DNA of 64,000 nucleotides, from the IMG/VR virus record IMGVR_UViG_3300024502_000010, positions 124,001 through 188,000 of that record; one strand, given 5' to 3'. Under the pieces are notes generated by a model, which was not told the DNA's origin, ran no database searches, and saw nothing but the letters and a program-made list of their open reading frames with translations. The position numbers and the translations under genes are program-made. Of the stretch, positions 4,901 through 64,000 are shown piece after piece. Numbering within the stretch: position 1 is the stretch's first letter; each line of letters starts with the position of its first letter.

Positions 4901-5962
4901 TCAAAGTGCGTTGCCCCGAGGCAAAACTTCCTCTGGAAAAACAAAATTTTCATGTGGTTGGTCTACGGGAGCCATCCAAGCACGAAGCCCTTCGTTAAGA
5001 AGTATATTCTTCGTGTAGAAAGTTTCGTATTCCGGATTGACGGCTGCTTCAATCTCCTGACTAACAAAGTCGTAAGCACGAAGATTGAGAGCAAGACCGA
5101 TAATCCCGATAGAAGATGTCCAGAGACCCATGACGGGAACAAAGAGCATAAAGAAATGTAACCAACGCTTGTTACTAAAAGCAATTCCAAAGATTTGCGA
5201 CCAGAAACGGTTAGCAGTAACCATTGAATAGGTTTCTTCCTCTTGTGTTGGTTCGAATGCCTTGAATGTATTTGCTTGATCACTATCTTCAAATAGTGTG
5301 TTTTCTACAGTTGCTCCGTGAATAGCACAGAGCAGTGCTCCACCCAGTATACCAGCAACACCCATCATATGAAATGGGTTAAGAGTCCAGTTGTGAAAAC
5401 CCTGAAGGAACAGAAGGAACCTGAAGATAGCAGCAACACCAAAGGAAGGTGCAAAGAACCAACTGGATTGACCCAGAGGGTACATCAGGAAGACGCTCAC
5501 AAACACTGCGATGGGACCAGAGAATGCAATTGCGTTGTAAGGACGGATGCCTACCAGTCGTGAGATCTCAAACTGGCGAAGCATAAATCCGATCAGACTA
5601 AAGGCCCCGTGGAGCGCCACAAAAGTCCATAGTCCCCCAAGTTGGAACCACCTGACGATATCCCCTTGAGCCTCAGGACCCCAGAGCAGAAGAAGAGAAT
5701 GACCCATAGAATCTGCTGGAGTACTAACTGCTGCAGTAAGAAAGTTTGCACCCTCAAGATAGGAACTCGCAAGCCCGTGAGTATACCAACTCGTGACGAA
5801 AGTTGTCCCAGTAATCCAACCACCAAGAGCAAGATAAGCAGTGGGAAAAAGAAGAAGTCCAGACCAGCCAACAAAAACGAAACGGTCTCTTTTAAGCCAG
5901 TCATCGAGTACATCAAACCATCCTCGTTGTTGAATAGGTTGTGAAAGTGTAGAAGAAGTCAT
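4901..5962 (-). CDS. psbD: photosystem II D2 protein
   Basis: Near-identical to D2 ([14 protein letters not shown]...[10 protein letters not shown]); no intron. Confidence 0.99.
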
Positions 5963-6582: not shown

Positions 6583-7317
6583 TTATCTTTTGTTTCTATT
6601 ATAAGTTGCTCTTACAGCATCAAAAGATACTCTATCCTTTTCCTTTTCATCATCGGGAAGATTTGAATATGATGTATTAGCAAGTTTTGCTCTTCTTTGT
6701 TTCTTTTCTGGTGTTTGGTCTGTACTTGTTTTAGCAGTTCTTGCCCAACCCTGATGAACTGCATCAGCACCTGCTTCTCTTGAAGTTCCACTACCACTTC
6801 TTTCACCTCTTCTAATAGCACGAAGGGCAGCGGCAGCAGATGAACGATTTGCTGCTCTACCGAAAGAACGCTTATCACCAGATGCTCTACCATATCCATA
6901 TCTTTTATCTAATGCAGCATCAGATGCTTTCTCATAAGGACTATCCTCTCTTTCTATAATATTGTCTCTCCACTCTTCACTCATATTCACCATAATTGCT
7001 TCTGCTGCTTGTTGAGTATCAGCATATCCTTCATCAAGTAAGTGTGAAAGAATTAGATCGTAAACATCTACTTCTTCTTTTGCTAAATCAGAATCGACAC
7101 GAACATTTGAACCTGTTCTTACATTTCTTCTTGCTGCTGCCTGATGAGCGCGGCGTCTTGCCATCCAAGCACCACTTATACCACCACTATCTACATCTTG
7201 TGCATCTCTCTTTCTTAACATTCCTTTGACTTTTCTATCAGAGATTTCATCCAGTTGCTGATTTTCAACAACTTCCATATATGCTTCTTGAAGATTGCGA
7301 AGTTCTTGTGCGTCCAT
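6583..7317 (-). CDS. late modular hypothetical protein (cyanophage LLDEGYA-module family)
   Basis: Late box CTAAATA upstream; module YDLILSHLLDEGYADTQQAAEAIMVNMSEEWR shared with the 63027 ORF. Confidence 0.8.
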   Translation of the reverse strand: MDAQELRNLQEAYMEVVENQQLDEISDRKVKGMLRKRDAQDVDSGGISGAWMARRRAHQAAARRNVRTGSNVRVDSDLAKEEVDVYDLILSHLLDEGYADTQQAAEAIMVNMSEEWRDNIIEREDSPYEKASDAALDKRYGYGRASGDKRSFGRAANRSSAAAALRAIRRGERSGSGTSREAGADAVHQGWARTAKTSTDQTPEKKQRRAKLANTSYSNLPDDEKEKDRVSFDAVRATYNRNKR

Positions 7318-7332
7318 TTTTATGAATACTTT

Positions 7333-7695
7333 TTAGTTATTTAGGTATTCTATCATCTTTTGAAGAGTGCTGATGTTGTCTCCTACAAGACCTAATGCAG
7401 TGTTGCAGTTGTTACAGAGAACACCACGAACCTTATTTGTAGAGTGGCAGTGGTCTATACACTTCTTGGTTAGTTCCACATCACATATTTGGCAGTTCTC
7501 ATTCTTCATTAGGTCATTATATTGGTCTTCTGTAAGTTTAAATCTGCGTCTAGCATATTCGTGAGTCTTATAATATTGCCTACGAACTTCCCGTTCACAA
7601 TCCTTACACTTTGATTGAACCCCAGAAGGTCTACTACTTCTTTTAGAGAAACTATCAAGTTCTTTTGTTTCTCCACATCTACTACAAGTTTTCAT
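7333..7695 (-). CDS. endonuclease VII-family homing endonuclease (F-CphI-like)
   Basis: CQIC...IDHCH..NKVRGVLCNNCNTALG Endo VII motif; N-terminal CxxC/CxxC; position downstream of psbA; start ATG at 7695. Confidence 0.88.
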   Translation of the reverse strand: MKTCSRCGETKELDSFSKRSSRPSGVQSKCKDCEREVRRQYYKTHEYARRRFKLTEDQYNDLMKNENCQICDVELTKKCIDHCHSTNKVRGVLCNNCNTALGLVGDNISTLQKMIEYLNN

Positions 7696-7792: not shown

Positions 7793-8872
7793 TCAACCGA
7801 TTGCGGGTGCAGTAAGGGCAACAGGAGTGTTGCTAGCAGCAGCAAGATCCAGAGGGAAATTGTGTGCATTCCTTTCGTGCATCACCTCGAGCCCGAGTCC
7901 AGCACGGTTCAGAACATCTGCCCAAGTGTTGAGGACACGACCCTGTGAATCAATGATGGACTGGTTAAAGTTGAAACCGTTGAGGTTGAATGCCATGGTG
8001 CTAACACCAAGAGCAGTGAACCAGATACCAACTACAGGCCATGCAGCAAGGAAGAAGTGCAGCGAACGTGAGTTATTAAAGGAAGCATATTGGAAAATAA
8101 GGCGTCCGAAATAACCGTGAGCAGCAACGATGTTATAGGTCTCTTCTTCTTGACCAAACTTGTAACCATAGTTCTGTGACTCGTTCTCAGTGGTTTCACG
8201 AACCAGTGAGGAAGTAACCAGAGAACCGTGCATAGCACTGAACAGAGAACCTCCAAAGACACCAGCCACACCAAGCATGTGGAAGGGGTGCATCAGGATG
8301 TTGTGCTCTGCCTGGAACACAAGCATATAGTTGAACGTACCAGAGATACCCAGAGGCATCGCATCAGAGAAAGAACCTTGACCGAAAGGATACACCAGGA
8401 ACACAGCAGAAGCAGCAGCCACAGGTGCAGAGTAAGCAACACAGATCCAAGGACGCATACCAAGACGGTATGAAAGTTCCCATTCACGACCCATGTAAGC
8501 GTAGATACCGATAAGGAAGTGGAACACTACAAGTTGGAAAGGACCACCGTTGTAAAGCCACTCATCAAGCGAAGCAGCTTCCCAGATGGGATAAAAGTGC
8601 AGTCCAATCGCGTTGGACGAAGGAATAACAGCACCAGAGATGATGTTGTTTCCGTACATGAGTGAACCAGCAACGGGTTCACGGATACCATCAATGTCCA
8701 CTGGGGGAGCACCGATGAATGCGATGATGAAACAAGTCGTAGCAGCAAGCAGGCAAGGAATCATGAGGACTCCGAACCAACCGACATAAAGACGATTATC
8801 GGTTGATGTGACCCAGTTGCAGAATTGTTCCCAAGTATTCGATTGTCGTTGACGTGAAATTGTAGCAGTCAT
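7793..8872 (-). CDS. psbA: photosystem II D1 protein
   Basis: Full D1 sequence; E130; H332/E333 retained; no intron. Confidence 0.99.
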
Positions 8873-19012: not shown

Positions 19013-19975
19013 TTACTGACCAATACGCCCAACAGCAATGCGTGATTTGTTGAGAACCGAACCTGCAAGAGGAACATAACCCAAATCATCAGCAATCATC
19101 TGTGCTTTTGTGCTCAAAGCATAGTTCAGAGCAGCACGGATATCATCAGTCTTAGCACCATTACCTTTCTTATATGCAAGGATCCAAGTCAGAGTAGAAA
19201 TTGGATATGCATTTGTTCCAGAGGGATTGGGATTTTCGCCAGCAAGGTTTGCATCCAGAGTAATGCTATTCAGAGCAGCAGCACCAGTCACAGCGGAAGG
19301 ACCGACAAACTTACCTGCCTTGTTTTGAATAACTGCTGCTTTAAGTTTGTTGGCACGAACAAATCCAGTATTCACATAACCAATAGCACCAGGAGTGTTT
19401 TTGATAGTACCAGAAACACCTTCGTTACCTTTTGAACCAACACCAGTAGGCCAATTAATAGACTTACCTACACCATAAGTCCAACCACCAAATGCTTCCA
19501 AAGAGTTGGTGAATGCAAAAGTAGTTCCAGAACCATCAGAACGATGAACAACTTTCATCGGACCAGCAGCACATCCGACTTGCTTCCAGTCTTTAATACG
19601 ACCAGCAAAAATATCAACAGTTTGCTTTTGAGTGAGTTTCAGAGTGCAACTAGGATTGTTGTAAGCAACAGCAATCGTTCCACCAATCATAGGGATCTGG
19701 ACAACACCACGCTTCACTTTTGCCGCTTCTGCGGGTTTGATGGGTTCGTCACTTGCTGCGAAATCAACCGTTCCCGCAAGGAATTGACGAACACCAGCAC
19801 CAGAACCAACGGACTGATAATTAACCCTACTCCCAGAAGTTCGTGCATAATCTTGGAACCATCGTTGATAAAGAGGTGCTGGGAAGGTGGCACCTGCACC
19901 GTTCAAAGTAGTCCCAGCAAATGCAGCAGCAGGAGCAAGAGCAAGACTAATAGAAATAAAGTTTTTGAGTTTCAT
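19013..19975 (-). CDS. pstS: phosphate ABC transporter substrate-binding protein
   Basis: GAGATFP, YQSVGSGAG, HRSDGSGTT and YPI motifs. Confidence 0.97.
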   Translation of the reverse strand: MKLKNFISISLALAPAAAFAGTTLNGAGATFPAPLYQRWFQDYARTSGSRVNYQSVGSGAGVRQFLAGTVDFAASDEPIKPAEAAKVKRGVVQIPMIGGTIAVAYNNPSCTLKLTQKQTVDIFAGRIKDWKQVGCAAGPMKVVHRSDGSGTTFAFTNSLEAFGGWTYGVGKSINWPTGVGSKGNEGVSGTIKNTPGAIGYVNTGFVRANKLKAAVIQNKAGKFVGPSAVTGAAALNSITLDANLAGENPNPSGTNAYPISTLTWILAYKKGNGAKTDDIRAALNYALSTKAQMIADDLGYVPLAGSVLNKSRIAVGRIGQ

Positions 19976-20045: not shown

Positions 20046-21338
<1,293 letters not shown>

Positions 21339-21357: not shown

Positions 21358-22854
21358 TCAGAAAGTAAATTTGGTTTGGATTACACCACCAAAGTTGGAA
21401 GAAGCATCAGTGAATGCTTGGTTGTTAGAAGCATAGAACACTGCAGGAGTAATAGTAATGTTATCGCTTACACGATACTTGTAGAATACTTCCCACATCG
21501 TTGCATCCTCATCCAGTCCTTCTGCATTACCAGGTTGACCCACAGCAAAACCTGCAGAATTACCCTTGGCAAGTACATCACTCCACTGAAGACCAGCATA
21601 CCAAGTTTGAGAATCGGTAGCACCAGCAGGAGTTGCTGCACCTTCAGCATTCAGACTTACAGTGTTCCAACCATAACCAGCAGATACCGAGGGAACAATG
21701 CCAGACTTAGAGGGTTGCCAGTAAGCACTCAGAGCATAACCGTTGGAGGTTTGACCTGGAGCAAGAGCACCAGAAGCACCAGCAACACCATTAAAGGTGC
21801 GAACACGAGTGCCTTCAGTACCATAACGATAACCGAATGCAATACCGTAGTTAGGAGCACGATAACCAATCTGTGCCAGAGTGTTCAGGGCACCCTTTTC
21901 GTTGAACTCACCTTTGGTGGAATCGCCACCATTTTGAGCAACATAGTTCAGACCAGCAACAAAACCTTTCTTACCTTGTGACCACTGGGCACCAAAACCA
22001 GCACCAGTTGCCTTGTTATAGACGCCAGGAGCACCAGCAAGTTGGAAGAAGTCAAGAACTTCCGACTTATATGCAGTAGGAATCCAGGTCATTTCAGTGT
22101 TACGAACCAGAGCACCAGCAGTCAGAGTTACACCCTTAGCAAGTGCAGGGAACTGATAGTAGAGACGGTCGAGAGTAACTGCATTTGCGGTACTCTCTGC
22201 CTTATCCAGTTTGAACAGAGAAGAAGAAGAACCGAAGGGTTGACTGGAGAAGTTGCCAGAACGCAGACGAGTGCGGAGCAGATCTTTACCAGTGAACGAT
22301 GTGTCAAAGTTCAGGCGAAGATCATAGTTGAATGCAGTATTACCAACATTCGTACTTGCAGTTGAACCGGGAGTCCAAGCATTATCTACACCACCAAGAA
22401 CAAAGTTTGCTTCACCGCGAAGTTTTGTGGTGGTAGAGAACTGAGTTGCTTCAAGAGCACCTACTTTGGTTTCCAAACTTGCAACCTTACCTTGAATAAC
22501 AGTGAGTTCATCACGGAACTCATTAGCAAGACGCTTGAGTTCATCAGTATTTTCTGTTACGCGATCCAAGCAAGCATTCAGAAGTGCTGCTGCCTCATAG
22601 CGAGTCATTGCTTTGCCACCACTGAAGGTGCCATTTGGATAACCAGCAACGCAACCATAACGCTCTACAAGGTTGCTGAGTGCCTGATATGCCCAATCCG
22701 TAGGTTGAACATCAGACAGTTGTGAGACGCTTGTGACCTGCTCAGAGGTTGCATATTGGTTGACTGCTGCCATGTTAAGGTCTGCCGCATTCGCAGCAAC
22801 AGGAGCAACCATTCCCAGAGCAACAGGTGCAAGCATCAGTTGTTTGAGTTTCAT
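21358..22854 (-). CDS. cyanobacterial SLH-domain outer-membrane porin (SomA/B, iron-uptake porin family)
   Basis: DVQPTDWAYQAL..LVERYGCVAGYP SLH domain; QFSTTTKL; terminal QTKFTF. Confidence 0.92.
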   Translation of the reverse strand: MKLKQLMLAPVALGMVAPVAANAADLNMAAVNQYATSEQVTSVSQLSDVQPTDWAYQALSNLVERYGCVAGYPNGTFSGGKAMTRYEAAALLNACLDRVTENTDELKRLANEFRDELTVIQGKVASLETKVGALEATQFSTTTKLRGEANFVLGGVDNAWTPGSTASTNVGNTAFNYDLRLNFDTSFTGKDLLRTRLRSGNFSSQPFGSSSSLFKLDKAESTANAVTLDRLYYQFPALAKGVTLTAGALVRNTEMTWIPTAYKSEVLDFFQLAGAPGVYNKATGAGFGAQWSQGKKGFVAGLNYVAQNGGDSTKGEFNEKGALNTLAQIGYRAPNYGIAFGYRYGTEGTRVRTFNGVAGASGALAPGQTSNGYALSAYWQPSKSGIVPSVSAGYGWNTVSLNAEGAATPAGATDSQTWYAGLQWSDVLAKGNSAGFAVGQPGNAEGLDEDATMWEVFYKYRVSDNITITPAVFYASNNQAFTDASSNFGGVIQTKFTF

Positions 22855-22950: not shown

Positions 22951-23762
22951 GTGTTTTGCTGAGAAGTAGAATTTTCGGTTATTCTCCCCAGATATGGATC
23001 ATAATCCATGTATTCTTCTATTTTAATTTTAGAACCATTTTGCTCCCAAAATTCGGAGAGTGCAGTGTGATTTCCTTTATGAAAAATATCAACATGTTCC
23101 GGATGAATAGATGATCCAAGTTCAATTCTATAAAAGAGAAGAGGAATTGAATATGTATTTCCAGAATTATAAATCAAATCATCCGCAACTGGACGAGGTT
23201 TGACTCCATTATCCAGTTTATATTTTTCTCCACGGACATGGAACTTCAATAACTTTTCTGCATGATGTCTATTAATAAGATAGCAAGCTGTTGAAAAGTC
23301 ATTAACAAATCTCTTATGCAATCTAACATGCAAATCACCAGTACAAATGATTGCGATTTGAACTACATCCCAATCATATGGAATATGTGCATAAAAATCT
23401 GACCAATTAAAATCCCAGTATTTCACCAAATCAAGATTACAATCATCTTCCATGATGATTGCATATGGACTATCTGAGGTTTCATACCAATGCTTTATTG
23501 CCTTAAGGTGAGATGTAATACATCCAATCTCACCCGATGTCATATTTTCAGGATAGCGACCTATTATAATATCACTTAAGTCATCTTCACGACCATCGTA
23601 TGCAGAGATGCGTGTATAATTTTCAACTTCCCAATATTTAAATTGGGACTCCATATATTCTCTCCTTTCTTGCTGTCCATCAAGATTAAGATAATAAATG
23701 GGTCCAATATTTTTTAGTTTGTATGCTGATTTATTCTTATCCAATTTATTAAAATCCATCAC
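22947..23762 (-). CDS. glycosyltransferase family 25
   Basis: YYLNLD...ERR...RISAYDG, GEIGC..SH.KA and IMEDD motifs. Confidence 0.88.
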   Translation of the reverse strand: MMDFNKLDKNKSAYKLKNIGPIYYLNLDGQQERREYMESQFKYWEVENYTRISAYDGREDDLSDIIIGRYPENMTSGEIGCITSHLKAIKHWYETSDSPYAIIMEDDCNLDLVKYWDFNWSDFYAHIPYDWDVVQIAIICTGDLHVRLHKRFVNDFSTACYLINRHHAEKLLKFHVRGEKYKLDNGVKPRPVADDLIYNSGNTYSIPLLFYRIELGSSIHPEHVDIFHKGNHTALSEFWEQNGSKIKIEEYMDYDPYLGRITENSTSQQNT

Positions 23763-24943
23763 AAATCAATCCAGTATACCTCTTCATTGGGAATTCCATC
23801 AACCACAACTCTATCTCCATATTTTGATTCTAGGAAATCTTTTACTTGACCAAGAATTGCTTGATTGTCAAGTACATATACTTTATAACCCTCATCGAGA
23901 AGGTCTAAGCAAAGACGATACTGCTGACTCTCGGTAAGGATATCAGTTCCTTCTTTATATGAAATGTAATGAAAAGCAAATGGAATTTTATTCTCGTTCT
24001 TTTTGATAAAGTAGGTTTTCAAAAACTTTGCGTGTTCATTATTAAAGTCATCAGTTGTTTTTCCAAGGTTATATTCTAAACCAAGTTTTTTTGCATAAGC
24101 AGCAAAAGAACGATTGTCTCTTGGTAAGCACGGACCACCAAATCCATATCCATATTTCAGATATTTACTACCAACTCTTGTATCAGAACCGATTGCTTTA
24201 AGAACATGATCAATTTCTTCTTCAAGACCAGCAAGAGACATGACTTCGCCAACCATATTTGCATAACTAATCTTGGTAGTTAAGAAACAATTGACTGCAA
24301 GTTTAACTAACTCTGCAGCAGTCGTTGACATAAAATAAATTCTTGGTTCTGTTACTTGAATTCTATTATAAATTTCTTCAATGAATGGGCGATACTGACC
24401 TTCGGGTCCACCAACAAGGACCATATCTGCATTCTGCAGGTCCTTAATAATATTTCCCTGAGCAATAAACTCAGGATTATAGTAAACATCTACGCCATAA
24501 GCATTGAGTTGGGATTGAAAATTATCACAATCACCCGGATTAGTTGTACATCCAACTACAAAACATTTACCTTTAACTTCAATCCCAAGGTCTGGAGCAT
24601 TTTGAATATCATTGATAACACCCCAAACAGCACTAACATCATAACTTCCGTCAGGAAGAGATGGCGTCGCTACCAGAGTATAAAGAACATCACACTCTCG
24701 GATAACATCATAGTTTCCAGTTTTAAATGTAATATTCTTTGCTTCAGAAAGAAGTTGCTGAACTTCTGGTTCGTGAGTATCAATGGTTCTTTGTAGAAGA
24801 CCATTTACATAGTCTTCTCTAACATCAGAGGCTACAACCTCATAACCTGCTTTTTCTAAAAGAAGGGCAAAGCAAATACCAAGTCTACCTGCCCCAATAA
24901 CTCCTACTTTCATTTTAGTTTTGCTGTAATAAGTAAATGCCAA
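23759..24943 (-). CDS. UDP-glucose/GDP-mannose dehydrogenase family protein
   Basis: GxGxxG, YNPEF, AELVKL and GFGGPCLPRD motifs. Confidence 0.92.
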   Translation of the reverse strand: MAFTYYSKTKMKVGVIGAGRLGICFALLLEKAGYEVVASDVREDYVNGLLQRTIDTHEPEVQQLLSEAKNITFKTGNYDVIRECDVLYTLVATPSLPDGSYDVSAVWGVINDIQNAPDLGIEVKGKCFVVGCTTNPGDCDNFQSQLNAYGVDVYYNPEFIAQGNIIKDLQNADMVLVGGPEGQYRPFIEEIYNRIQVTEPRIYFMSTTAAELVKLAVNCFLTTKISYANMVGEVMSLAGLEEEIDHVLKAIGSDTRVGSKYLKYGYGFGGPCLPRDNRSFAAYAKKLGLEYNLGKTTDDFNNEHAKFLKTYFIKKNENKIPFAFHYISYKEGTDILTESQQYRLCLDLLDEGYKVYVLDNQAILGQVKDFLESKYGDRVVVDGIPNEEVYWIDL

Positions 24944-25683
24944 CCAAGATTTTTTTCAAGAACTCTAAACATTTCCGGAGGCATGGATTCAAACCAAGGT
25001 TGTCTCACATACTCACCATTCTTATAAGGTTCTATTTGATAGGGGAAGATATGATCCTGTTCAATTGATAGAACTTCATATCCATCCAACAAGTCTACCA
25101 CATCTTGCTTAGTATATGTATTAGCGATTGGACAACCATACTGTGCTTCTGGTTGATCAAGACCAGACTCAATCATATAATTTTTCCAAGAGTCTTTTGC
25201 ATAAAGCATAATCTTGAGAACACTATTCTCGTTCATATACTTTTTAATCTCAGAAATAATCTTTTCTGGGTGAGGACTATGATGAATTACCCCAAAAGAA
25301 TAAACCAAATCATAAGTCTCTGCAGGGACAAAGGTTGAAAGTTCTTCAGCGTTTCCAGAATAAAACTTTCCAGTCTGCTCAAATACTTCAAATCTTTGTT
25401 TAGCAAGTTCAAGACTTGATTCAGAAAGTTCTACTCCAGTATAATCTGCCCCATTAAGAGCAAAGTTCAAACCAACTGTAGCAAGACCACAACCAATCTC
25501 TAAAACTTTTTTACCTTCCCATTTGGAAAATTCAGTGAAGTCAAGGATGTGAGGTTCAACAAAAAATTTCTTTCTTTCTACCTCATTAAAATATTCTTTA
25601 GTACCAACCTCTTTTGAAGAATGTCTGACATTGCAGGGACGATCATCCCAAAACTTTTTTACTTCGGTAATTGTTGCAGTCAT
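24910..25683 (-). CDS. class I SAM-dependent methyltransferase
   Basis: VLEIGCG and YDLVYSFGVIHH motifs. Confidence 0.88.
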   Translation of the reverse strand: MTATITEVKKFWDDRPCNVRHSSKEVGTKEYFNEVERKKFFVEPHILDFTEFSKWEGKKVLEIGCGLATVGLNFALNGADYTGVELSESSLELAKQRFEVFEQTGKFYSGNAEELSTFVPAETYDLVYSFGVIHHSPHPEKIISEIKKYMNENSVLKIMLYAKDSWKNYMIESGLDQPEAQYGCPIANTYTKQDVVDLLDGYEVLSIEQDHIFPYQIEPYKNGEYVRQPWFESMPPEMFRVLEKNLGWHLLITAKLK

Positions 25684-26564
25684 AATGGAATATTGAAATT
25701 ATAGTCTACTTTAATTGTTGACGGATAAGTGAAACACCAAAAATTATCTCTCACATAGGTCAAATCAGTTCTCATAAATGAAGCAATATATGAAAAAGCA
25801 CTGTTTGCCATAATAAAGCAATCTGAGTATATCATATGATATAAGTCACTGATTGGATGTTCATCTATATGAAGTTTAACTTCAAACATTTCTGTTGTTA
25901 GATTTACAAATTCTTCAAATGAATTAGTAAATCCCTGAGAGTAAATATGAAGAACTGTCTTCTTATTATAATATTTTTGTTTCAACCTGTCAATCAGATT
26001 CAAATATCTAGAGAAATCTCTCTCATAATTATAAAGTTCCCTTTCGGTTGAAGAGGCATCAACATCTTTTGGATTTTCCGTCCTTATATGTAGGGCAATA
26101 TTTACCTCATCATTATTGAAATATTTTTCTCCACTAAATCGCAAATTATTCTTTGCCTCTTTTACTAACTCTTCAGTAAAAATTATATCAGAATTCTGCT
26201 CACAGAAACACATCATGGGCCAAGTTGCACCATGCTGAGGAAGTTCAATTAAAATTTCTTTGTTAGTATTTCTATTTTCTGCAATAAAATTTACAAGATT
26301 TTGATCAAAAGAAAAACCTCTAATTATTTCATCTGGATTTTTTAACTTAGGAAAATTAAAAAACTCTTCAAATGATTTGGACCAAGATTCACTGTCACCA
26401 GTATAATCAGTATACTCAAAGTGAGACAGGTCTTTAACTCCTGAAAAAGAAAACTCAACTCCAAAAAATTTGGAAACAAAACTGAGCATAATGGGGTACA
26501 TCATCATAGCACCCGCACCCTCAGTTTTATTTCCGTTCATGTCCAACGATAAGTGTAAAGACAT
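25680..26564 (-). CDS. GT11/O-fucosyltransferase-like protein
   Basis: IALHIR and DLYHMIYSD..IMANSAFSY motifs. Confidence 0.55.
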   Translation of the reverse strand: MSLHLSLDMNGNKTEGAGAMMMYPIMLSFVSKFFGVEFSFSGVKDLSHFEYTDYTGDSESWSKSFEEFFNFPKLKNPDEIIRGFSFDQNLVNFIAENRNTNKEILIELPQHGATWPMMCFCEQNSDIIFTEELVKEAKNNLRFSGEKYFNNDEVNIALHIRTENPKDVDASSTERELYNYERDFSRYLNLIDRLKQKYYNKKTVLHIYSQGFTNSFEEFVNLTTEMFEVKLHIDEHPISDLYHMIYSDCFIMANSAFSYIASFMRTDLTYVRDNFWCFTYPSTIKVDYNFNIPL

Positions 26565-26571
26565 ATAATAA

Positions 26572-27330
26572 TTACAGAGTAAAAGTTGGAATAGGAATCA
26601 TTTTATGTTTGTTTTGAGTATTAAATCTTTGCAGAATCTTTACTGCACTGCCCGTCCCAAATTCCATTGCCTCTTCAAGTTCTGCGTAAGAAGCACCAAT
26701 TTGAGATTCATCACTTCTACCATCTTCCCAAAGTCCATCAGTAGGAGGTGCAGAAATAATCCGTTCATCAACACCAAGATGTTCCCCCAACATCCAAACC
26801 TCAGTTTTATACAGGTCGGCAATAGGAGCAATATCTACTCCACCATCACCATACTTAGTATAGAATCCTACACCATAATCTTCAACCTTGTTCCCAGTAC
26901 CAACTACAATACCACCAACACATCCAGCAACTTGATACAAAGTAACCATACGAATGCGTGACTTTGTATTTGCATTTGCAAGATTATTCTTGGTAAACTC
27001 TCCTTCCCCTGTCCAGAAATCAAATGACTTCATAAGTTGATCGTATGTACCAGTCAAATCAATTCTAACTTTAGTTACATTATCATACTTATCTTCCAAT
27101 ACATTGGAATAAGAATCAGATAGTTCATCATTTTTAAAAGATGAATGAAGAGGCATAGACAAAACATATGTTGGAAGTCCTGTCTCGGCACAGAGAGTAG
27201 AGACAACGGCAGAATCAATTCCACCAGAGACTCCAACTACAAGAGATTTAATATTATTCTCAGAAGCATAATTTTGAATCCAAGAAACTATTTTATTTTT
27301 TAATTCTGAGTAATCATTAATACGGTTCAT
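26572..27330 (-). CDS. nadE: NH3-dependent NAD+ synthetase
   Basis: GVSGGIDSA, N.KSRIRM, GTGNKVE, YTKYGDGG.D..PI.DLYK and PTDGLW motifs. Confidence 0.95.
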   Translation of the reverse strand: MNRINDYSELKNKIVSWIQNYASENNIKSLVVGVSGGIDSAVVSTLCAETGLPTYVLSMPLHSSFKNDELSDSYSNVLEDKYDNVTKVRIDLTGTYDQLMKSFDFWTGEGEFTKNNLANANTKSRIRMVTLYQVAGCVGGIVVGTGNKVEDYGVGFYTKYGDGGVDIAPIADLYKTEVWMLGEHLGVDERIISAPPTDGLWEDGRSDESQIGASYAELEEAMEFGTGSAVKILQRFNTQNKHKMIPIPTFTL

Positions 27331-31232: not shown

Positions 31233-31250
31233 ATATTATTTTTATTATTC

Positions 31251-47883: not shown

Positions 47884-49086
47884 TTATTTTTGTCTAGCTC
47901 TTTGAAGGGCTCTCATAAGAGCACCAGATCTAGTCGTTGATTTTTCAGTATTACTAGAATTTTTTTCACGATTTTCTCTACTTGGAATTACTCTCCTATT
48001 ATCAGAAGAATCACCCGGATGAATTGCTTGAAATCTTGATTTTGTTGTTTCACTTCTTCTATTTGGTTGTGCTTGAATATGATCTACATCATGCTTTTGC
48101 CCTGTTTCCTGAGACTTACTTTTTGCCTCATCTCTTTGAGACTTTTTCCTTCCCCTTTCAATTCTTAATGCTCTATTCGCATTTTTTTTACAATCACCCG
48201 GATGCAAATTTCTTTTACAATGATCTTCCAACTCTTTATGACTAATCGCTTTTAGATTTTCTTTTCTCCTTTCATCTTGGTCTTTTCTTTTTTCTTTGGA
48301 TTCTAGTCCCCAATATGGAGTTTCTGCAGTTTGTCTATTTTTTAATCTATAAGCATTTGGATTTTCTTGTGATTGTCGAATTTTCTCAGCATCTTCTCTA
48401 GAACGGATTCTAGTATATTTTCTTGCTTCTAAAATAATATAACACTCATATATAAACTCACTAAAAGTTTTTCCATTAAAGGAATCACTCAACTTCGCCA
48501 TCTGAACACCAGTCTTGGGATTTCTTTCTCCCATTCCTAGTTTCTTATAAATTCTACCTCTTTGTTCTGCACCTTCCTCACCACTTCTACTCTTTTTACC
48601 CTTAGACTTAGCAGAATCAATAGCAGTAGGAGTATTTGTAGCAACTCCTTTCTTTGACTTCATAGTATCTTTTACGCCTTTGAGAGCACCAACAAATTGT
48701 CTTGCTCTTTGTCCGGGATCTTTTACTTTAGATTTTGGAGAACCAACAGTGATATCATGAACTGGAGAATCTTTCTTAGCACCAGTTTTACCAAACTGTT
48801 TTTTTAATTCTTTACTCTGTGGCTTATCACCCTCTCTATGTTGCTTTCTTGCAGTATGAGCAGCATAATCTCCAGGAGACTTATGAGTTCTTACCCAAAC
48901 AGGAACATCTTTTCCACTCTTTTCTACTTTTGGATCTTGAATGGGACCTTTTTTCCTAAACCCCGCACGAGAAACATCTTTTCTCGCGGCACCTTCTGAT
49001 CCACGCATATTCATAGTTCCGGAAGGTCTAACTTTTTTCCCTACCATCAAAGTCCTTTCATCAAGGATTTCTTCTTGAAACTGCAT
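47884..49086 (-). CDS. late modular basic protein with C-terminal HNH-like domain
   Basis: HDVDHIQ...G.SSDNRRVIP.REN.EK at the C-terminus; internal KTFSEFI..ILE linker. Confidence 0.7.
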   Translation of the reverse strand: MQFQEEILDERTLMVGKKVRPSGTMNMRGSEGAARKDVSRAGFRKKGPIQDPKVEKSGKDVPVWVRTHKSPGDYAAHTARKQHREGDKPQSKELKKQFGKTGAKKDSPVHDITVGSPKSKVKDPGQRARQFVGALKGVKDTMKSKKGVATNTPTAIDSAKSKGKKSRSGEEGAEQRGRIYKKLGMGERNPKTGVQMAKLSDSFNGKTFSEFIYECYIILEARKYTRIRSREDAEKIRQSQENPNAYRLKNRQTAETPYWGLESKEKRKDQDERRKENLKAISHKELEDHCKRNLHPGDCKKNANRALRIERGRKKSQRDEAKSKSQETGQKHDVDHIQAQPNRRSETTKSRFQAIHPGDSSDNRRVIPSRENREKNSSNTEKSTTRSGALMRALQRARQK

Positions 49087-58518: not shown

Positions 58519-60819
58519 TCACTTCATATATTTTTGCATTTCTGGATTATCTCTATAGTTAATCCTTCTATCATACTTATTTGCGACATCTGCAACATTT
58601 CCTAAAAGAGGAACTCCCTTGAGACCTTTAGCAAGTGCTGCAGATGCAGTTTGTGGTTTAGATTTAGCAGTAGCAGGTTTTGCTACTGGTTTTGCTGCAG
58701 GAGGTTTCTTATCTGGAGTTACGCCAACAGTAGTTTGACCACCACGTTCTTTACCCAAAAGTTGATTCATAGATTGTTTATTTGGTTTAATCTGTGAACC
58801 AGAACCAACTCTTTGATTATGTCTATTTACATCGGACTGAGAAACTCCTGGTTTAAAACTTCCAGGAACTGTCTTACCAAAAACTTTCTGAACCGTTCCA
58901 GCCTGTGTAAATTTTGATCCAGAATTATATCCTGCTTGAGTTTTTCCAGCAACAACTCTACCAGTTCCTAAGAATTCGTTAATATTTTGCTCTGCGATTT
59001 TCTTTGCCATTTTAGTAGCAGTCGCATACATTACTTCTTTACCGCGACCAGGATATCTCTTCTCAAAGTCTCCTGCCTTGGACTTCATTGACTTAACGAT
59101 TCTTTCCTTTTCTTTAGTCTCCGCAGAGGTTAGGGTTTTTTCATCAATTATGTTTCCATCAGGTTCGTAATGAGCAACCATTGTAGAAGGCTTTTTCTTT
59201 AAACTTGCCTGAGGTAGATTTAACCCCGGTGTTGGACGAGGAACATCTCCAGGAATTCCCCCTTCCCATGCACCAGATCCACCTGTTTTTTGTGCATCTT
59301 TTCTATACCACTGCCCACCAGCAGTTCTACCATATTTATTAGGAGCATACTCAGCTTCATCAATATGCACTTCCTCACTTCTTACACTTGCAAGAAGATC
59401 ATCTAACTTAGACTTTCTTTTTGGTTTTGCTTTTGGTTTTGTCTTTTCTTTAGCATCAATTTTTGCTTTTACTTCAGCAGGTGATGGAGATCCTTTTCTT
59501 GCTTTTTTAGCTGGTCTCCCCTCTTCTTTTTTGGGAGGAGTTGTTGCACTTCCTTCCCATGGGTCAGCGGGTTTTTCTGCTTTCTTAGGTGCTGCCGTTG
59601 GTTTTGGTGCCTCTTTTTGTGCTTTTGATTTTGAAGGTTTGCCACCTTCAATCTTACGAGCAACATTTCTTGCTCCTCTTGATACCGACCTTGCGGCTTT
59701 TGCAAGACCTCTCTTCAATTTTGAACCAATTCTCGAAAGAAGACCTGGTTTTTTATCTTCTCCATCTGAAGTTGATTTACCACTACCAGAATCTGAAGTA
59801 GTTGAAGTTCCTGAAGTTGTAGTTGATGATGAAGAAGATCCACTTCTACCTCTCTCATAACCTTTTCTTGCTGCAGAACCCAGTGCTCTTGCTCCTCTTA
59901 CTGCAGCACCAGCTGCATATCCAAGTCCACCAGCAATTGCTTTACCAACTTTCTTTACAGCACCTTTGACTTTTTGAAGTCTATCACTCTTAATATCAGT
60001 GTCGTGACCATAAGTAACTTTTGCCTCATTTAAAAGTGCAGAAGAAATTTCAAGAGATTCAAGTAACTCATTTTCAATATCATTGATATCATATCCTTCT
60101 TCAATACACTCATAGAAAAATTCTTGGACAACTTCTTCAATTAAAGAATCTGACAGTAGGAAAATTTCCATGTCTGACATTTCATCAAGAACTCCATTGA
60201 AATCTTCAATCTCATTCATTTCAAGAAGAGTTCCACCAAGTTCTTCAATTTTTTCCCCAAGATCAAGTTTTGGATTGATGTCAACTTTATTGTTAACTTC
60301 CTTTTCAACTACTCTTGGTTCTTTACCTTCACCTTTAATCTTATCTGCAACTTCAATTAAATCATCTCTCCAATTTGAAAAACTCTCTTTTCTAACGCCA
60401 ATTGCTTTTCCACGAACTTTTCTACGATGCTTCAGATATTCATCAGACTTATCTACATCACCATCATTGTCAATATCCGAATCTTCTTTTCCTACAGGAT
60501 CAAGTGCTTCTTTTTGGGTTGCAATTGCTTTACCAATTGCTTTACGACGCTTATGGAGGTACTTATCTGACTTATCTACATCACCATCATTGTCAATATC
60601 CGAATCTTCTTTTCCTACAGGATCAAGTGCTTCTTTTATTTTTTTCTTATCTCTCATTGCCTTTGCTTTAGCAAGAGTTCTTTCTCTTGCAGCATCCTGC
60701 TCAGACTTAGGAATAGCAGTCACTGCACCAAGTCTCTCGGCGGGTTTACCGGGAACCGCAGATTCGACAACCTGCTCCAAATAAAGTTTGGAGATATCTT
60801 TTAAATTATTGGAGTTCAT
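58519..60819 (-). CDS. large late modular low-complexity protein
   Basis: Alternating basic and acidic modules; duplicated DIDNDGDVD motif. Confidence 0.8.
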   Translation of the reverse strand: MNSNNLKDISKLYLEQVVESAVPGKPAERLGAVTAIPKSEQDAARERTLAKAKAMRDKKKIKEALDPVGKEDSDIDNDGDVDKSDKYLHKRRKAIGKAIATQKEALDPVGKEDSDIDNDGDVDKSDEYLKHRRKVRGKAIGVRKESFSNWRDDLIEVADKIKGEGKEPRVVEKEVNNKVDINPKLDLGEKIEELGGTLLEMNEIEDFNGVLDEMSDMEIFLLSDSLIEEVVQEFFYECIEEGYDINDIENELLESLEISSALLNEAKVTYGHDTDIKSDRLQKVKGAVKKVGKAIAGGLGYAAGAAVRGARALGSAARKGYERGRSGSSSSSTTTSGTSTTSDSGSGKSTSDGEDKKPGLLSRIGSKLKRGLAKAARSVSRGARNVARKIEGGKPSKSKAQKEAPKPTAAPKKAEKPADPWEGSATTPPKKEEGRPAKKARKGSPSPAEVKAKIDAKEKTKPKAKPKRKSKLDDLLASVRSEEVHIDEAEYAPNKYGRTAGGQWYRKDAQKTGGSGAWEGGIPGDVPRPTPGLNLPQASLKKKPSTMVAHYEPDGNIIDEKTLTSAETKEKERIVKSMKSKAGDFEKRYPGRGKEVMYATATKMAKKIAEQNINEFLGTGRVVAGKTQAGYNSGSKFTQAGTVQKVFGKTVPGSFKPGVSQSDVNRHNQRVGSGSQIKPNKQSMNQLLGKERGGQTTVGVTPDKKPPAAKPVAKPATAKSKPQTASAALAKGLKGVPLLGNVADVANKYDRRINYRDNPEMQKYMK
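60446..60637 (-). repeat. perfect 69-bp direct repeat (60446-60514 and 60569-60637)
   Basis: Identical copies 123 nt apart, encoding KEALDPVGKEDSDIDNDGDVDKS. Confidence 0.95.
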
Positions 60820-60820: not shown

Positions 60821-62122
60821 TTAAAAAGTACTTGCTTTTTTTGCTTTATACTTATTTATGAAATTGATACCATAAGCCTTGCCACCCTTCTGCAAATATT
60901 GTTTATTAGTTCCCACTGCACCGGGAGTTTTTGATGCATAATGCTTAAATGCCCCCAATGTACCAACAAGAGTATTTGGATGCTTTTCGTCTCTCATTGG
61001 ACTATCCATTTGAACTTCGGTATATTCCATCACATCTTTAATCCAAGACTTAAACATATAACCCTCTTCAGTCACACAGATTAAATGATTGGTTCCCCTA
61101 CGCATTACTTCACCAATCAAACCAGTATTAAGGTTTTGAACTTTATCACCGATTCTGAAAATTTTACCTCTCACATAATTCTCACGAAGATTTCTCATAT
61201 CATACTTTGGAGCAATCTCCCATAAAGCAAAACTTTCCTTTTTGATTGCTGACTTTTTAACACCCATTCCCTGACGAACAGCATTGAATAAACCTTGAGT
61301 TTCTGCATCATCAAGAGACTTTGGAGTGCCTCTTCTAAAAGATTTAAAATCGCCATCAATAACTGCCTTTCTCATCTTCGATGCCGACATTCCCTCAACA
61401 CCCTCAGCATCAGCATCACGAACACCAGCAGAGATTACCCTAATTTGATCAAAGGTATAAAGTTCTCCATTATACTTTTGTGCCAGATTTTCAAACTCTG
61501 CTTGCCTATCTGAACCAACAACAATATTGACATTAGTATACCCGTCTTCATTAGCGGTAATGAGAACATTAAAAATTGTCTTCATTTCCTTATCATTAAT
61601 AATGTTCTCCTCGAACTCAGGGAACATTTTCTTCATATAAGAAACTTTACTATCAGGGTCTAAAGGATTCTTCTTTGGATCTTGAGACCTTGAAGGATAA
61701 ATCTTAATATCTCCACCGGCAGAAATTCTCTTTGCTGACTTGAGAAGTTTTTCGTGCCCCACTGTTGGTGGATTGAAGCGACCAAATACAACAGTGAGTG
61801 GTGGAAGTTCTTCTGCAGGTTGCTCTTCGGGTTCTTGTCCTGGTGCTGCTTGAGGTTGTGGTGCAGGTTCTTGTGCTGTAGCGATTGGTTGAGGAGATGG
61901 TGCTTGTGCTGCTTGAGGTGCTTGTGTCTCTGGTTGTTTTGCACCTTTTGCTTGGCGACCATCAATATATTTAAGTTTCCCCTTCTCCGTTCTCGCAATG
62001 ACTTTACCGGAACGGTCAATCCATCCACCATGACCATCACCAACCAATCCAAGTTTTTTCGCTTGCATCGCTGCTTGCGATTGTGTTGCCTCAGACAAAA
62101 ACTGAAAGAAATTTTTCATCAA
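60821..62122 (-). CDS. cytidylyltransferase-like (HxGH nucleotidyltransferase) protein
   Basis: FGRFNPPTVGHEKL, VVGSDR and MSASKMR motifs. Confidence 0.85.
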   Translation of the reverse strand: MMKNFFQFLSEATQSQAAMQAKKLGLVGDGHGGWIDRSGKVIARTEKGKLKYIDGRQAKGAKQPETQAPQAAQAPSPQPIATAQEPAPQPQAAPGQEPEEQPAEELPPLTVVFGRFNPPTVGHEKLLKSAKRISAGGDIKIYPSRSQDPKKNPLDPDSKVSYMKKMFPEFEENIINDKEMKTIFNVLITANEDGYTNVNIVVGSDRQAEFENLAQKYNGELYTFDQIRVISAGVRDADAEGVEGMSASKMRKAVIDGDFKSFRRGTPKSLDDAETQGLFNAVRQGMGVKKSAIKKESFALWEIAPKYDMRNLRENYVRGKIFRIGDKVQNLNTGLIGEVMRRGTNHLICVTEEGYMFKSWIKDVMEYTEVQMDSPMRDEKHPNTLVGTLGAFKHYASKTPGAVGTNKQYLQKGGKAYGINFINKYKAKKASTF

Positions 62123-62159: not shown

Positions 62160-62849
62160 TTACTTTGCATATTGTGCAAGTAAAAAATCAACTCCTTTAT
62201 CAATATCATACTTTGATTTTGGTGGTTTATTTGTGATTTGCAATGCGGTTGTAAATCTATAATTATAGATTGTTCCACTCCCACCTCTTTTCAACCTCAA
62301 TCTAATTCTCAAACCAGGATTAAATTGAGGAACTGGAAGACCGGCAGGGTTTGCTGCCATATAATATAATCCATATCCACCAATTTGAATATAATAAGTT
62401 TGTTTAGAACCATAGTAACCCCATAAAGCACTTGATTTAATTGGTAAAAATGCATCAGTAAATCTCGCATAGTCAGATTTTACCATATCATCAGTCATTG
62501 CTTTATTATCAATGATTCCTTTATTTGGTGGTCCTTTAGGTCCCCATTGCTTATTTGCAAAATTTTCAATGCCAACAGTTCTCATTAAATTTCTAAGTTC
62601 TTCAGCTGCGGCAGTTTTTGCTCCACCAAGAACCCATCTTCCATTCTGATATTCTAAGGTTCCTTGACCATAATCGGCTTTCAAATCAAGTTTTACTTCA
62701 AGTTTATATGGTTTTTTATTATATAAAAACATTGCGTCTGGTGCATTAGAATCAGAACCTGCTGGAGTAAATCCCGGAGGCACTAATTTTTTAGACAACA
62801 ATTTTCTATGAATTTTACCTTCGTAGATAAACCCCTGTTCGCCAGCCAT
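62160..62849 (-). CDS. putative PD-(D/E)XK nuclease
   Basis: G..YE..I, PDA and LEVK spacing. Confidence 0.5.
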   Translation of the reverse strand: MAGEQGFIYEGKIHRKLLSKKLVPPGFTPAGSDSNAPDAMFLYNKKPYKLEVKLDLKADYGQGTLEYQNGRWVLGGAKTAAAEELRNLMRTVGIENFANKQWGPKGPPNKGIIDNKAMTDDMVKSDYARFTDAFLPIKSSALWGYYGSKQTYYIQIGGYGLYYMAANPAGLPVPQFNPGLRIRLRLKRGGSGTIYNYRFTTALQITNKPPKSKYDIDKGVDFLLAQYAK

Positions 62850-63026: not shown

Positions 63027-64000
63027 TCAGTCGTGCTCACCCATTGCTTTTTGCTTACGGAGTTTCTTAGGATTCTTAGTAATTCCACCAGGACCCTCTG
63101 AAGGATAATCGTGGTCGGCACGAGTTCCTACACCGTGAGCAGAACCTGCTCTTGCTCTTTCTCTATCATCGGCAGTTAGACCCTTTCTTGGAGAACCATA
63201 AGCATCCTTTCTGTTGGCAGGATTGGTTCTCCTTTGCATTGCTTTTAAGAATGGCTTTCTCTTTGCAGTCATCTTGGTTTTTAATGCTGCACTATATGCT
63301 TTTGGAGTTTCGCCGTATGAACCTTCTGCTTCAGAAATAATTTCAGATCTCCACTCTTCACTCATATTTGCCATAATAGCGATTGCTGCCTCTTCAGTTT
63401 CAGCATATCCTTCATCGAGCAAATATCCTTTTACAATATCGAACATATCAAATCCAGAAACAATACTTCCTGGCTTTTTGGAACCAGTTGCCTTATTTAC
63501 TGGAGCAGGGGCTGCTGCTGGGGTTGGTTTTAGTGCTGCAACGGCACCACTCTTTACAATAGCATCAGCTTTTGCTTTTTGTTGATCTGGAGCATTACCA
63601 GTTTGATATCCAAATGTCTTTTGCATTAAAGGATTTGGAGTTTTTGGTTTGATTGATTCTGGACCTGCTGCCTTTGTTCCAGGAGCTGGTTTTGCTGCAG
63701 CGGTTGGTGCTGGTTTTGTTGCAGGAGCAGTTGGCGCTGGTTTTGCTGCTGCTGGTCTTGCTGCTGGGGTTGCTGCTGGTCTTGCTGCTGCTGGTCTTGC
63801 TGCTGCTGGTTTTGCTGCTGGTTTTGCTGCTGGTTTTGCTGCTGGTTTTGCTGCAGGGGGTTTTGCTGCTTGCTTTTGGAGATATTCACCAGTTGTAGAG
63901 ACTCTTCTGTTTGCCTCAACACCACTCATTCCAGTTTTCATTAATTTTTGAACTTTTGCTTTACCACCACCAGCAGAAAATGCAGTCATTACAGGTGCTT
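63027..64000 (-). CDS. late modular protein (5'-truncated) with PAAK repeats and LLDEGYA module
   Basis: Frame appears open to the window edge; FDIVKGYLLDEGYAETEEAAIAIMANMSEEWR. Confidence 0.8.
   Translation of the reverse strand, partial: APVMTAFSAGGGKAKVQKLMKTGMSGVEANRRVSTTGEYLQKQAAKPPAAKPAAKPAAKPAAKPAAARPAAARPAATPAARPAAAKPAPTAPATKPAPTAAAKPAPGTKAAGPESIKPKTPNPLMQKTFGYQTGNAPDQQKAKADAIVKSGAVAALKPTPAAAPAPVNKATGSKKPGSIVSGFDMFDIVKGYLLDEGYAETEEAAIAIMANMSEEWRSEIISEAEGSYGETPKAYSAALKTKMTAKRKPFLKAMQRRTNPANRKDAYGSPRKGLTADDRERARAGSAHGVGTRADHDYPSEGPGGITKNPKKLRKQKAMGEHD
63720..63870 (-). repeat. 12/15-bp coding repeats encoding (A)AKP/(A)ARP
   Basis: Tandem TGCTGCTGGTTT / TGCTGCTGGTCT units on the plus strand. 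Confidence 0.9.

Follow-up and report, generated by a model that had tools for sequence, protein, structure and literature searches.

Putative precursors of internal head proteins carrying a shared LLDEGYA module in a T4-like cyanomyovirus

We analysed a stretch of 64,000 nucleotides (the window), corresponding to genome positions 124001-188000 of the 204,829-bp IMG/VR record IMGVR_UViG_3300024502_000010 (a T4-like cyanomyovirus, estimated to be 78% complete), and in particular the open reading frame (ORF) A and the genes related to it. We found that ORF A and its paralogues belong to a family with a common architecture, a late-promoter motif, a module with an exact boundary, cargo exchanged with leaders of the capsid-targeting sequence (CTS) type, and homology to virion proteins detected by mass spectrometry (MS). 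We give roughly even odds (about 50%) to the interpretation that these proteins are late precursors of internal head (prohead-core) proteins, which would be cut by gp21 at I/L-x-E sites and would have as their address either the ancestral CTS or a cyanophage-specific leader combined with an acidic prodomain. The argument rests on boundary statistics, the exchange of cargo and virion data from relatives, and not on the [LI]xE motif alone.

The boundary in question is the end of the LLDEGYA module. The conserved Trp (W) of the sequence ...NMSEEW served as the anchor for 72 instances of the module; in 51 of them the protein continues, and in 21 the module ends it. In the continuing instances position W+4 was always Ile (51/51) and W+6 was Glu in 46/51, and the information content dropped from 3.67 bits at W+6 to 1.63 bits at W+7 and to approximately 1 bit or less at most later positions. 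All 21 ORFs with a C-terminal module terminate at W+6 or at most one residue away from it, 19 of them exactly there with Gly (..SIIG, ..SILG or ..SIVG before the stop codon), and Glu does not occur at W+6 (0/21). This terminal state is found behind at least 15 unrelated linker clusters; on a module tree built without W+5 and W+6, which is poorly resolved, it requires ~10 changes by parsimony, at least two of them forced by well-supported branches. Retention of Glu only when sequence follows is what a P1 residue would be expected to show; a purely structural residue would not be expected to behave in this way. An I/L-x-E motif follows the module in every instance from a cultured phage: EILE/G, EILE/N, NILIDE/G, FILDE/M, SILE/G and SILDE/A (a slash within a sequence marks the candidate junction).

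The exchange of cargo links this junction with the T4 system. In the CTS of T4, residues 4 and 7 serve targeting and residues 8 and 10 processing, gp21 cuts after L/I-x-E, and the criterion for a CTS is a 10-aa N-terminus with an aromatic or hydrophobic residue at positions 4 and 7, L/I at 8 and E at 10 (PMC9026906). The T4 internal proteins (IPs) IPII and IPIII start with MKTYQEFIAE/A, as we verified in the T4 record NC_000866. Two further ORFs of the analysed genome (genome positions 57669-58277 and 202735-203448) start with MKTFQEF and come close to this rule, with V or M at position 8. In IMG/VR, scanning for this pattern revealed at least 120 MKTFQEF loci; the pattern was placed at the ORF start in 79 of the 82 ORFs examined, the late motif was present in 62 of these 82, the usual continuation was [ILVM]xE/A (some ORFs read MKTFQEFIAEA), and the cargo of 70 sampled proteins formed 23 clusters. 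The cargo unit GMTMKDFKANR...TKNPKKLRKQKAMGEL stands behind the LLDEGYA module in paralogue C (...EEWRESIMIAE/GMTM) and at locus L093 (...EEIME/GMTM), and behind a bare CTS-type leader, MKTFQEFMVIAE, at loci L119, L136, L147 and L171 (MKTFQEFM[VEM]IAE/GMTM or ...YAIEE/GMTL). Since the same cargo follows either prefix, with the joint located exactly after I-x-E, the two kinds of prefix are interchangeable.

A further case is the 47884 ORF, which has a copy of the MKTFQEF-type leader in its interior (KTFSEFIYECYIILE/A, positions 48427-48471). Its residues 206-232 align with residues 2-27 of many MKTFQEF-leader proteins, and one of its relatives carries the same units in reverse order. The initial annotation of this DNA had proposed a shuffled repertoire of effectors, and had drawn attention to the N-terminus MKNFFQFLSE (62090-62119) and to an internal KTFSEFI..ILE segment in the 47884 ORF, which is the copy mentioned above. 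Both sequences are present, and the shuffling is supported by the occurrence of the same units in differing orders and behind differing leaders (in IMG/VR ORFs, in the shared cargo unit and in the 47884 ORF).

The evidence from virions comes from relatives. The region 56.7-64 kb of the window is syntenic with ORF89-97 of phage S-SCSM1 (GenBank "virion protein"), whose virion proteins, including ORF89, ORF91 and ORF92, were identified using liquid chromatography-tandem mass spectrometry (LC-MS/MS) of CsCl-purified virions (PMC9602691). ORF89 carries the family leader (MDSKTFNSLSEAYAAVY; leader hidden Markov model (HMM), E 5e-6), and its module is divergent and ends with SILDE/A (module HMM, E 2e-6); ORF91 is an NMNAT 60% identical to the product of the 60821 ORF, and ORF92 is a homologue of the 766-aa protein encoded by the 58519 ORF. 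Homology to these three MS-detected proteins (PMC9602691) supports the earlier suggestion that the proteins of the window may be head-packaged. According to the authors of the S-SCSM1 study, NMNAT-like proteins are recurrent in cyanophage virion proteomes (PMC9602691), and the cytidylyltransferase of S-SZBM1 is included in its published virion list. The N-termini of the NMNAT of the window and of its orthologues (MKSFLQFLKE/A in S-SCSM1, MKNFHQFITE/A in S-SRM01, MKSFSKFFSE/A in S-SCSM2R and MKSFLNFLFE/A in S-CAM7) conform to MK[NS]FxxF[LIF]xE/A, which agrees with the T4 CTS at each of its four key positions (4, 7, 8 and 10). In the 766-aa protein, an L-x-E motif marks the transition from acidic to basic sequence (LLNE/AKVTYG); it is kept in S-CREM1 ORF219 as YLEE/AKVTVG, and the latter ORF also carries the AEGSYG...KAMGE unit twice, each time behind h-x-E.

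The whole record contains four copies of the LLDEGYA module (E 3e-28 to 8e-14), which define the paralogues A, B, C and D, the last being the 63027 ORF. In a BLASTP comparison of ORF A with the 63027 ORF (E 7e-17, 43/119 identities) the identities were concentrated in residues 83-122 of the former and 180-220 of the latter, and the shared pattern described initially, (Y/F)D(L/I)..(H/Y)LLDEGYA(D/E)T..AA.AIM.NMSEEWR, proved to be correct. The match is not a product of chance, because besides the four copies in the record the module was found at no fewer than 549 confirmed IMG/VR loci (module scan) and in 2785 metagenomic proteins (word-based protein search, E<=1e-3). Among cultured phages it is present in S-SRM01, S-CAM7, B3/B23, DSL-LC02/03, S-CRM01 and S-SCSM2R, and in a divergent form in S-SCSM1; individual carriers are S-CAM7 gp210, S-SRM01 gp231, S-CRM01 g291/g292 and S-SCSM1 ORF89. 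PHROGs 3708, 22522 and 26015 (function unknown) take pieces of the family, and Pfam contains no family for them. The initial annotation had regarded the sequence in which the module is embedded as otherwise unrelated, which was too strong, as this sequence is a mosaic: the N-terminal 24 aa, MDAQ(E/D)xRxLQEAYMEVVE(NQQLDE), are common to A, B and C, a basic unit ending with TKNPKKLRKQ(K/Q)AMGE is common to B, C and D, and a promoter/leader cassette accompanies all four.

The members of the family (126-472 aa) are mostly non-enzymatic and basic, most candidates having an isoelectric point (pI) of 8.7-10.4, and no Pfam enzymatic domain was found in A-D (182-401 aa). We calculated the charge of each part in 69 distinct complete IMG/VR ORFs: the mean was -4.2 for the leader, +10.5 for the linker, -9.9 for the module and +7.3 for the tail, both the linker and the tail being positive in 100% of the ORFs. 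The N-terminal motif of the family is MDAQELRNLQEAY..V; residues L9, E11, A12, Y13 and V16 are kept in 57-63 of the 69 ORFs, and the first four, which form LQE/AY, are the best conserved positions of the leader. Behind one leader plus module there are 41 linker clusters. Among the A-type orthologues, mean pairwise identity is 0.56 in the leader (residues 1-24), 0.10 in the linker (25-80), 0.76 in the module (81-122) and 0.87 in the C-terminal domain (123-244), the best conserved part. Linkers that are always basic, yet only 10% identical, indicate selection on composition and not on sequence, as expected of DNA-associated protamine-like polypeptides.

Table 1. Coordinates of ORF A, its paralogues and the neighbouring candidate genes (positions in the window unless marked as genome positions)
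Feature	Position	Strand	Remarks
ORF A	6583-7317	-	244 aa
Late-promoter-like motif and conserved 5' leader of ORF A	7318..7345	-	CCTAAATAACTAAAAAGTATTCATAAAA; abuts the start codon (ATG)
ORF A residues 1-24, acidic N-terminal leader	7246..7317	-	MDAQELRNLQEAYMEVVENQQLDE; L-x-E twice: LQE/A at 9-11, LDE/ at 22-24
ORF A residues 25-80, hypervariable basic linker	7078..7245	-	
ORF A residues 81-122, LLDEGYA module	6952..7077	-	EEVDVYDLILSHLLDEGYADTQQAAEAIMVNMSEEWRDNIIE; strongly acidic, I-x-E at end
ORF A residues 123-244 and stop, highly conserved helical C-terminal domain	6583..6951	-	RyR-repeat-like signature AVHQGW...Y.NLPDDEKEKDR
Paralogue B	genome 195636-196184		182 aa
Paralogue C	genome 59003-59647		214 aa
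Paralogue D (63027 ORF)	genome 187027-188232; window 63027..64000	-	401 aa; start beyond window end
Content of paralogue D	module at 63330-63452	-	EEGYDLS module; AKP-rich H1-like repeats; LLDEGYA module ending IISE/AEGSYG; basic unit ending TKNPKKLRKQKAMGE
47884 ORF	47884..49086	-	400 aa, very basic (pI 10.2), late; leader MQFQEEILDE/R at 49057-49086
766-aa late protein (58519 ORF)	58519..60819	-	acidic EEGYD-type and DNDGD repeat modules, then long basic stretches
NMNAT/cytidylyltransferase-like late protein (60821 ORF)	60821..62119	-	PHROG 395, E 1e-102; start MKNFFQFLSE/A at 62090-62119
229-aa basic late protein (62160 ORF)	62160..62849	-	10-aa N-terminus ending I-x-E (MAGEQGFIYE/GK); candidate member

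The cassette ATAAATA[AC]CTAAAAAGTA(T/C)T..TAAA(A/G)ATG lies upstream of all four paralogues and of the 47884 ORF, the variant of ORF A being CCTAAATA, and [ACT]ATAAATA is located at -28 to -41 of the 58519, 60821, 62160 and 57323 ORFs. As a motif, the T4-type late promoter (TATAAATA) is thus present in front of A-D and the 47884, 58519, 60821 and 62160 ORFs. Either ATAAATA or CTAAATA was found within 50 nt upstream of 82 of the 83 complete family ORFs from IMG/VR. These motifs, which precede all the ORFs named in the initial annotation, agree with their description as late genes. RNA-library contigs identical to the ORF A locus were also identified; they are assembled contigs, which cannot show transcription, its starts or its timing.

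Taking these results together, we propose that the precursors would alternate acidic conserved "handling" parts (the 24-aa leader and the 42-aa module) with basic hypervariable "cargo", which would comprise protamine-like stretches and, in some cases, a folded domain, of which the RyR-like domain of ORF A would be an example. Following late synthesis, they would be incorporated into the prohead core, and a gp21-type serine protease would cut them after Glu, at LQE/A and LDE/ in the leader and at I-x-E/ at the module end. The basic pieces would remain with the packaged DNA, and some enzymes provided with a T4-type leader (NMNAT, and an S-adenosylmethionine (SAM) lyase encoded elsewhere in the genome) may enter the host together with it. 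Before cleavage, the probable function of the acidic module is to mask the basic cargo and/or to aid targeting. The conserved promoter, leader and module sequences might, in addition, double as recombination handles which shuffle cargo between genes. The term polyprotein, used initially for ORF A, is overstated for a 244-aa protein with perhaps 2-3 cuts.

The basis for cleavage is indirect: it comprises the module boundary with its Glu/Gly dichotomy, the shared cargo, and the conservation of a site in gp23. The protease gp21 (Peptidase_S77) was detected in all five of the complete module-bearing cyanophages searched (E 1e-33 to 1e-38), and gp23 is present in all five as well. The segment FLTE/AE of T4 gp23, which we take to be its maturation cleavage site, aligns with FLGE/AA, FLSE/AS, FLSE/TP and FLAE/AP in the relatives, and its conservation makes L-x-E specificity plausible for cyanophage gp21. 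In T4, processing is blocked by Asp at P1.

Several observations weigh against cleavage and an interior location in the head which, like the roles of the module and injection, are inferred. The [LI]xE motif has only two specified residues and low information content, and since it also occurs inside the conserved core of the module (LLDE/GYA), not every such site can be cut. Relative to composition-shuffled sequences, A, C, D and the 766-aa protein contained it at ~2x the expected frequency (p 0.001-0.06), and the other six candidates showed no enrichment; we rejected global enrichment as stand-alone evidence, because the segregation of acidic helical and basic blocks can explain the excess. 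The (L/I)-x-E sites listed in the initial annotation all exist, but a basic stretch does not follow every one of them (e.g. NIIE/REDSPYEK). On the supporting side, N-terminal [LI]xE leaders of 9-11 aa were found in 6/38 late-promoter genes versus 8/257 others (Fisher p 0.004, with independence overstated, as A, B and C are paralogous), and the strict T4-like N-terminal pattern in 3/295 genes versus 1.1 expected, which is suggestive only. In the A subfamily, residues beyond I120-x-E122 are also invariant (E124, S126, Y128 onward), and the Glu could there be simply structural.

The remaining points against the proposal concern the comparison with T4 and the virion data. The leaders of ORF A and paralogues B-D depart from the T4 CTS: MDAQELRNLQE has Q4 and R7, with L9/E11 offset by one. 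The assignment of a CTS made initially is supported by the N-terminus of NMNAT, its four orthologues and the MKTFQEF family; ORF A has a different leader. The leader and module HMMs gave no match below E 5 among the T4 proteins IPI-III, Alt, gp67 and gp68 (NC_000866), and homology of the module to a T4 core protein was consequently rejected. Confidence in the AlphaFold2 (AF2) model of ORF A is low for the leader and module. The 30 virion proteins detected by MS in S-SZBM1 do not include ORF194, a protein sharing B-like segments; this is a weak negative. Neither gp21 (PF03420) nor gp23 (PF07068) was matched in the 204.8-kb record itself, for which the search of the five relatives served as a positive control, and the whole gp13-gp23 head/neck block is absent from it; as the record is only 78% complete, we consider the missing gp21 and gp23 uninformative and not a negative result.

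An alternative is that the proteins are virion-associated and remain at full length, either as internal proteins which condense DNA or neutralise its charge, or as accessory proteins of the capsid or tail, with I-x-E being simply the end of the last helix of the module. The detection of homologues in virions fits cleaved and intact proteins alike, the [LI]xE motif is of low information content, and conservation in the A subfamily continues through I-x-E into the C-terminal domain. Against such a view stand the presence of Glu in 46/51 modules when sequence follows and in 0/21 when the ORF ends, the occurrence of the same cargo behind a T4-CTS-type leader, which in T4 is cleaved off, and the retention of gp21 and of the gp23 cleavage motif in the relatives, and we regard it as unlikely. 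It is quite unlikely that the proteins are not packaged at all, and act late in the cell as H1- or protamine-like DNA binders or as regulators of phage or host DNA, with the module serving for oligomerisation or partner binding. The basic composition (pI 8.7-10.4 for most candidates) and the AKP repeats of paralogue D, which resemble H1-type tails, are in accordance with this role, and the virion data concern homologues from other phages and not the members from this one; yet S-SCSM1 ORF89, which has the same leader and module, was found together with its syntenic neighbours in CsCl-purified virions, and the cargo is shared with CTS-type leaders.

The leader and module might also be regarded mainly as recombination or expression cassettes acting at the DNA level, the protein motifs having no role in targeting or processing and only the variable parts being functional. 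Within this one genome, the leader and module regions of the paralogues have exact stretches of 30-40 nt in common; third-codon-position identity at identical residues amounts to 0.71-0.90 among the paralogues, and for the pair A-B nucleotide identity exceeds amino-acid identity. Moreover, de Bruijn unitigs of four RNA-library runs break exactly at the repeated segments, namely at 6981-7010 (the repeated module) and 7272-7291 (the repeated leader/promoter cassette). The shared stretches and the unitig breaks point to recombination or gene conversion via conserved handles as the mechanism of shuffling; such shuffling has been proposed for T-even IP loci. In distant cyanophages with diverged DNA (S-CRM01, S-CAM7 and S-SCSM1) the module is nevertheless kept as a protein, and it retains specific residues, namely those of the DEGYA core as well as I at W+4 and E at W+6. 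We consider a mainly DNA-level explanation improbable; it is compatible with precursors of internal head proteins, and does not exclude them.

Internal head proteins of T4, e.g. the anti-restriction protein IPI* and Alt, enter the host with the DNA. The family resembles IPI, IPII, IPIII and Alt in consisting of late genes for small basic proteins with diverse, poorly conserved cargo, in the leader of ~10 aa ending with (I/L)-x-E/A on NMNAT (MKNFFQFLSE/A) and MKTFQEF[IV]xE on two other ORFs, and in the presence of a gp21-type protease, here in relatives. It differs from the T4 IPs in its longer leader (MDAQELRNLQEAY..V..) and its internal acidic LLDEGYA module, which is absent from T4, and in the stringing of several units in one ORF; cleavage and packaging are here proposed. 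As in the polymorphic T-even IP loci, a conserved leader-coding sequence precedes interchangeable, fast-diverging basic cargo (PMC9026906), whereas in the present family there are two handles (leader and module) and the genes are dispersed at 59, 130, 187 and 195 kb and do not form one locus.

The jumbo phages phiKZ, 201phi2-1 and SPN3US have head-internal proteins whose propeptides are cut after Glu at a minimal x-x-E motif by the gp21-like protease gp175; the propeptide regions contain redundant sites and the products are DNA-associated (PMC9026906). Use of a Glu-ended motif for removal of propeptides is common to their inner-body and ejection proteins and to our proposal; in those jumbo phages, however, the cut follows S/A/G-x-E, in proteins unrelated to the present ones and in particles with an inner body, whereas here P3 is Ile/Leu, as in T4. 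The idea of multi-unit precursors which are delivered with DNA and cut into effector units is also shared with the polyvalent proteins of phages and conjugative elements described by Iyer, Aravind et al. (cited in PMC7824862). Those proteins are very large, dominated by enzymatic domains and equipped with their own peptidases, features which A-D lack. Adenovirus pVII and pre-Mu are basic DNA-condensing precursors that are processed inside the particle by the viral protease; the virus, the protease and the motif are unrelated, and the analogy is one of principle only.

The folded "cargo" of ORF A itself would be its C-terminal domain, which we describe as RyR-like. Pfam RyR (PF02026) scored 15.5 bits (E 0.021) against the single sequence, under the 27.4 cut-off, and the family profile matched RyR repeats of the PDB (6uhi, E 2.4e-4; 4n05, E 0.018; 6uag/3nrt, E 0.09-0.12) with the signature ..H..W......Y..LPeeEKe.DR aligned. 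The AF2 model had a predicted local distance difference test (pLDDT) score of 73-96 in this domain, and a Foldseek search of the model against the PDB found only generic helical repeats, none of which reached E<=0.001. A review of jumbo phages contained nothing on RyR domains.

The idea of effectors is most concrete for a predicted SAM lyase with a MKTFQEF leader, and NMNAT may be a second case. The former is encoded by a late ORF (237 aa) at genome positions 202735-203448 (minus strand, locus L008, outside the window) with the T4-CTS-like start MKTFQEFVVECYSIQE; its residues 33-169 match the SAM lyase family PF23780 (66.1 bits versus the cut-off of 28, E 3.9e-18), so that the 32-aa leader is outside the domain. 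We consider this protein a candidate packaged anti-restriction enzyme. Its C-terminal module is common to ~260 cyanophage records. The same genome encodes an S-adenosyl-L-homocysteine hydrolase (AdoHcyase, E 1.7e-65; window 20046-21299, minus strand), located between a PstS-like phosphate-binding protein (19013-19975) and an SLH/OprB porin (21358-22854). In another IMG/VR locus (L165, 962-1504), a 181-aa ORF starts with MKTFQEFIAEAKRLKF, which equals the T4 CTS except for Y4F, and gives weak PARP/ART-PolyVal matches (E 4e-4 and 6e-3, under the cut-off); it may be an Alt-like packaged ADP-ribosyltransferase.

Among the other genes of the cluster, the 229-aa protein has orthologues in P-SSM2, P-SSM5 and P-TIM40, and its position, promoter and N-terminal pattern make it a candidate component of the system. 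Residues 65-147 of the 766-aa protein (58519-60819, minus strand) form a tandem repeat, EALDPVGKEDSDIDNDGDVDKSD(K/E)YL..RRK, with a DxDxDG calcium-binding-like motif; this unit occurs in ~150 cyanophage records, including within the "cytidyltransferase" gene of Syn9. S-SCSM1 ORF93 (locus L015, 6560-6769) encodes a 69-aa virion protein detected by MS, with a DUF3008-like start (MPAVSKAQQRFMGMVHAVKKG) and a CTS-like motif at its very C-terminus (...KKKRTFKEFLEYIE); T4 Alt is processed at both ends. In the C-terminal third of the 47884 ORF (47884-48300, minus strand), HDVDHIQ...HPGDSSDNRRVIPSRENREKN resembles an HNH nuclease signature, with no Pfam match at E<0.1. Directly downstream of this ORF there are 12 tRNA genes (42165-47432, minus strand; Met, Ile x2, Pro, Ser x2, Val, Gly, Leu, Arg, Glu and Tyr), and several apparent ORFs at 47052-47426 are tRNA DNA translated as protein.

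ORF A is flanked by psbD (4901-5962) and psbA (7793-8872), and the T4-type replication and baseplate genes of the record include those for gp32, gp41, gp43, gp44, gp61, UvsX, NrdAB, gp5, gp6 and gp25. The best nucleotide match of the window is Synechococcus phage S-SKS1 (83% across endonuclease VII and psbA), and riverine metagenomes and metatranscriptomes carry the stretch at 100% word share. A block of ~20 same-strand ORFs of 200-420 aa (23000-40700, minus strand) resembles a sugar-modification/glycosyltransferase cluster of the lipopolysaccharide (LPS) type; LPS-like glycosyltransferase clusters have been described for P-SSM2-type cyanophages.

The CTS and processing by gp21 are textbook knowledge for T4. 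Our search of the literature combining capsid targeting sequences with cyanophages or Synechococcus returned only papers on T4 and SPN3US, in the cyanophage papers that report finding these proteins in virions there is no mention of a CTS, and there was no annotated counterpart of internal proteins for cyanophage genomes in the literature searched. What appears to be new is the leader/prodomain architecture with the LLDEGYA module, along with its scale of thousands of genes and the fact that it and the T4-type CTS are interchangeable. On the whole, the interpretation given in the initial annotation is partly supported.

To conclude, T4-like cyanophages are among the most abundant viruses of sunlit waters. 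It is possible, although we put this forward only tentatively, that their capsids are filled with cleavable precursors from a large repertoire shuffled by recombination. These would yield DNA-bound protamine-like peptides and delivered enzymes (NMNAT, SAM lyase and possibly an ADP-ribosyltransferase-like protein), and would use two interchangeable address systems: the ancestral MKTFQEFxxE/A CTS, and the cyanophage-specific leader with an acidic LLDEGYA prodomain, which would keep the basic cargo masked up to the cut by gp21 at I-x-E. The family can be tested directly on phages which are already in culture. If the family is indeed one of precursors of internal head proteins, it would explain the repeated and puzzling presence of an NMNAT-like enzyme and of many "hypothetical" proteins in cyanophage virions, and would place the SAM lyase well for acting against host restriction once the DNA enters the cell. 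It would also provide a sequence rule (late promoter, leader and I-x-E junction) by which packaged cargo could be predicted for thousands of phages, marine and freshwater, that have not been cultured, and would identify a hypervariable class of genes whose diversity is probably driven by interaction with the host.

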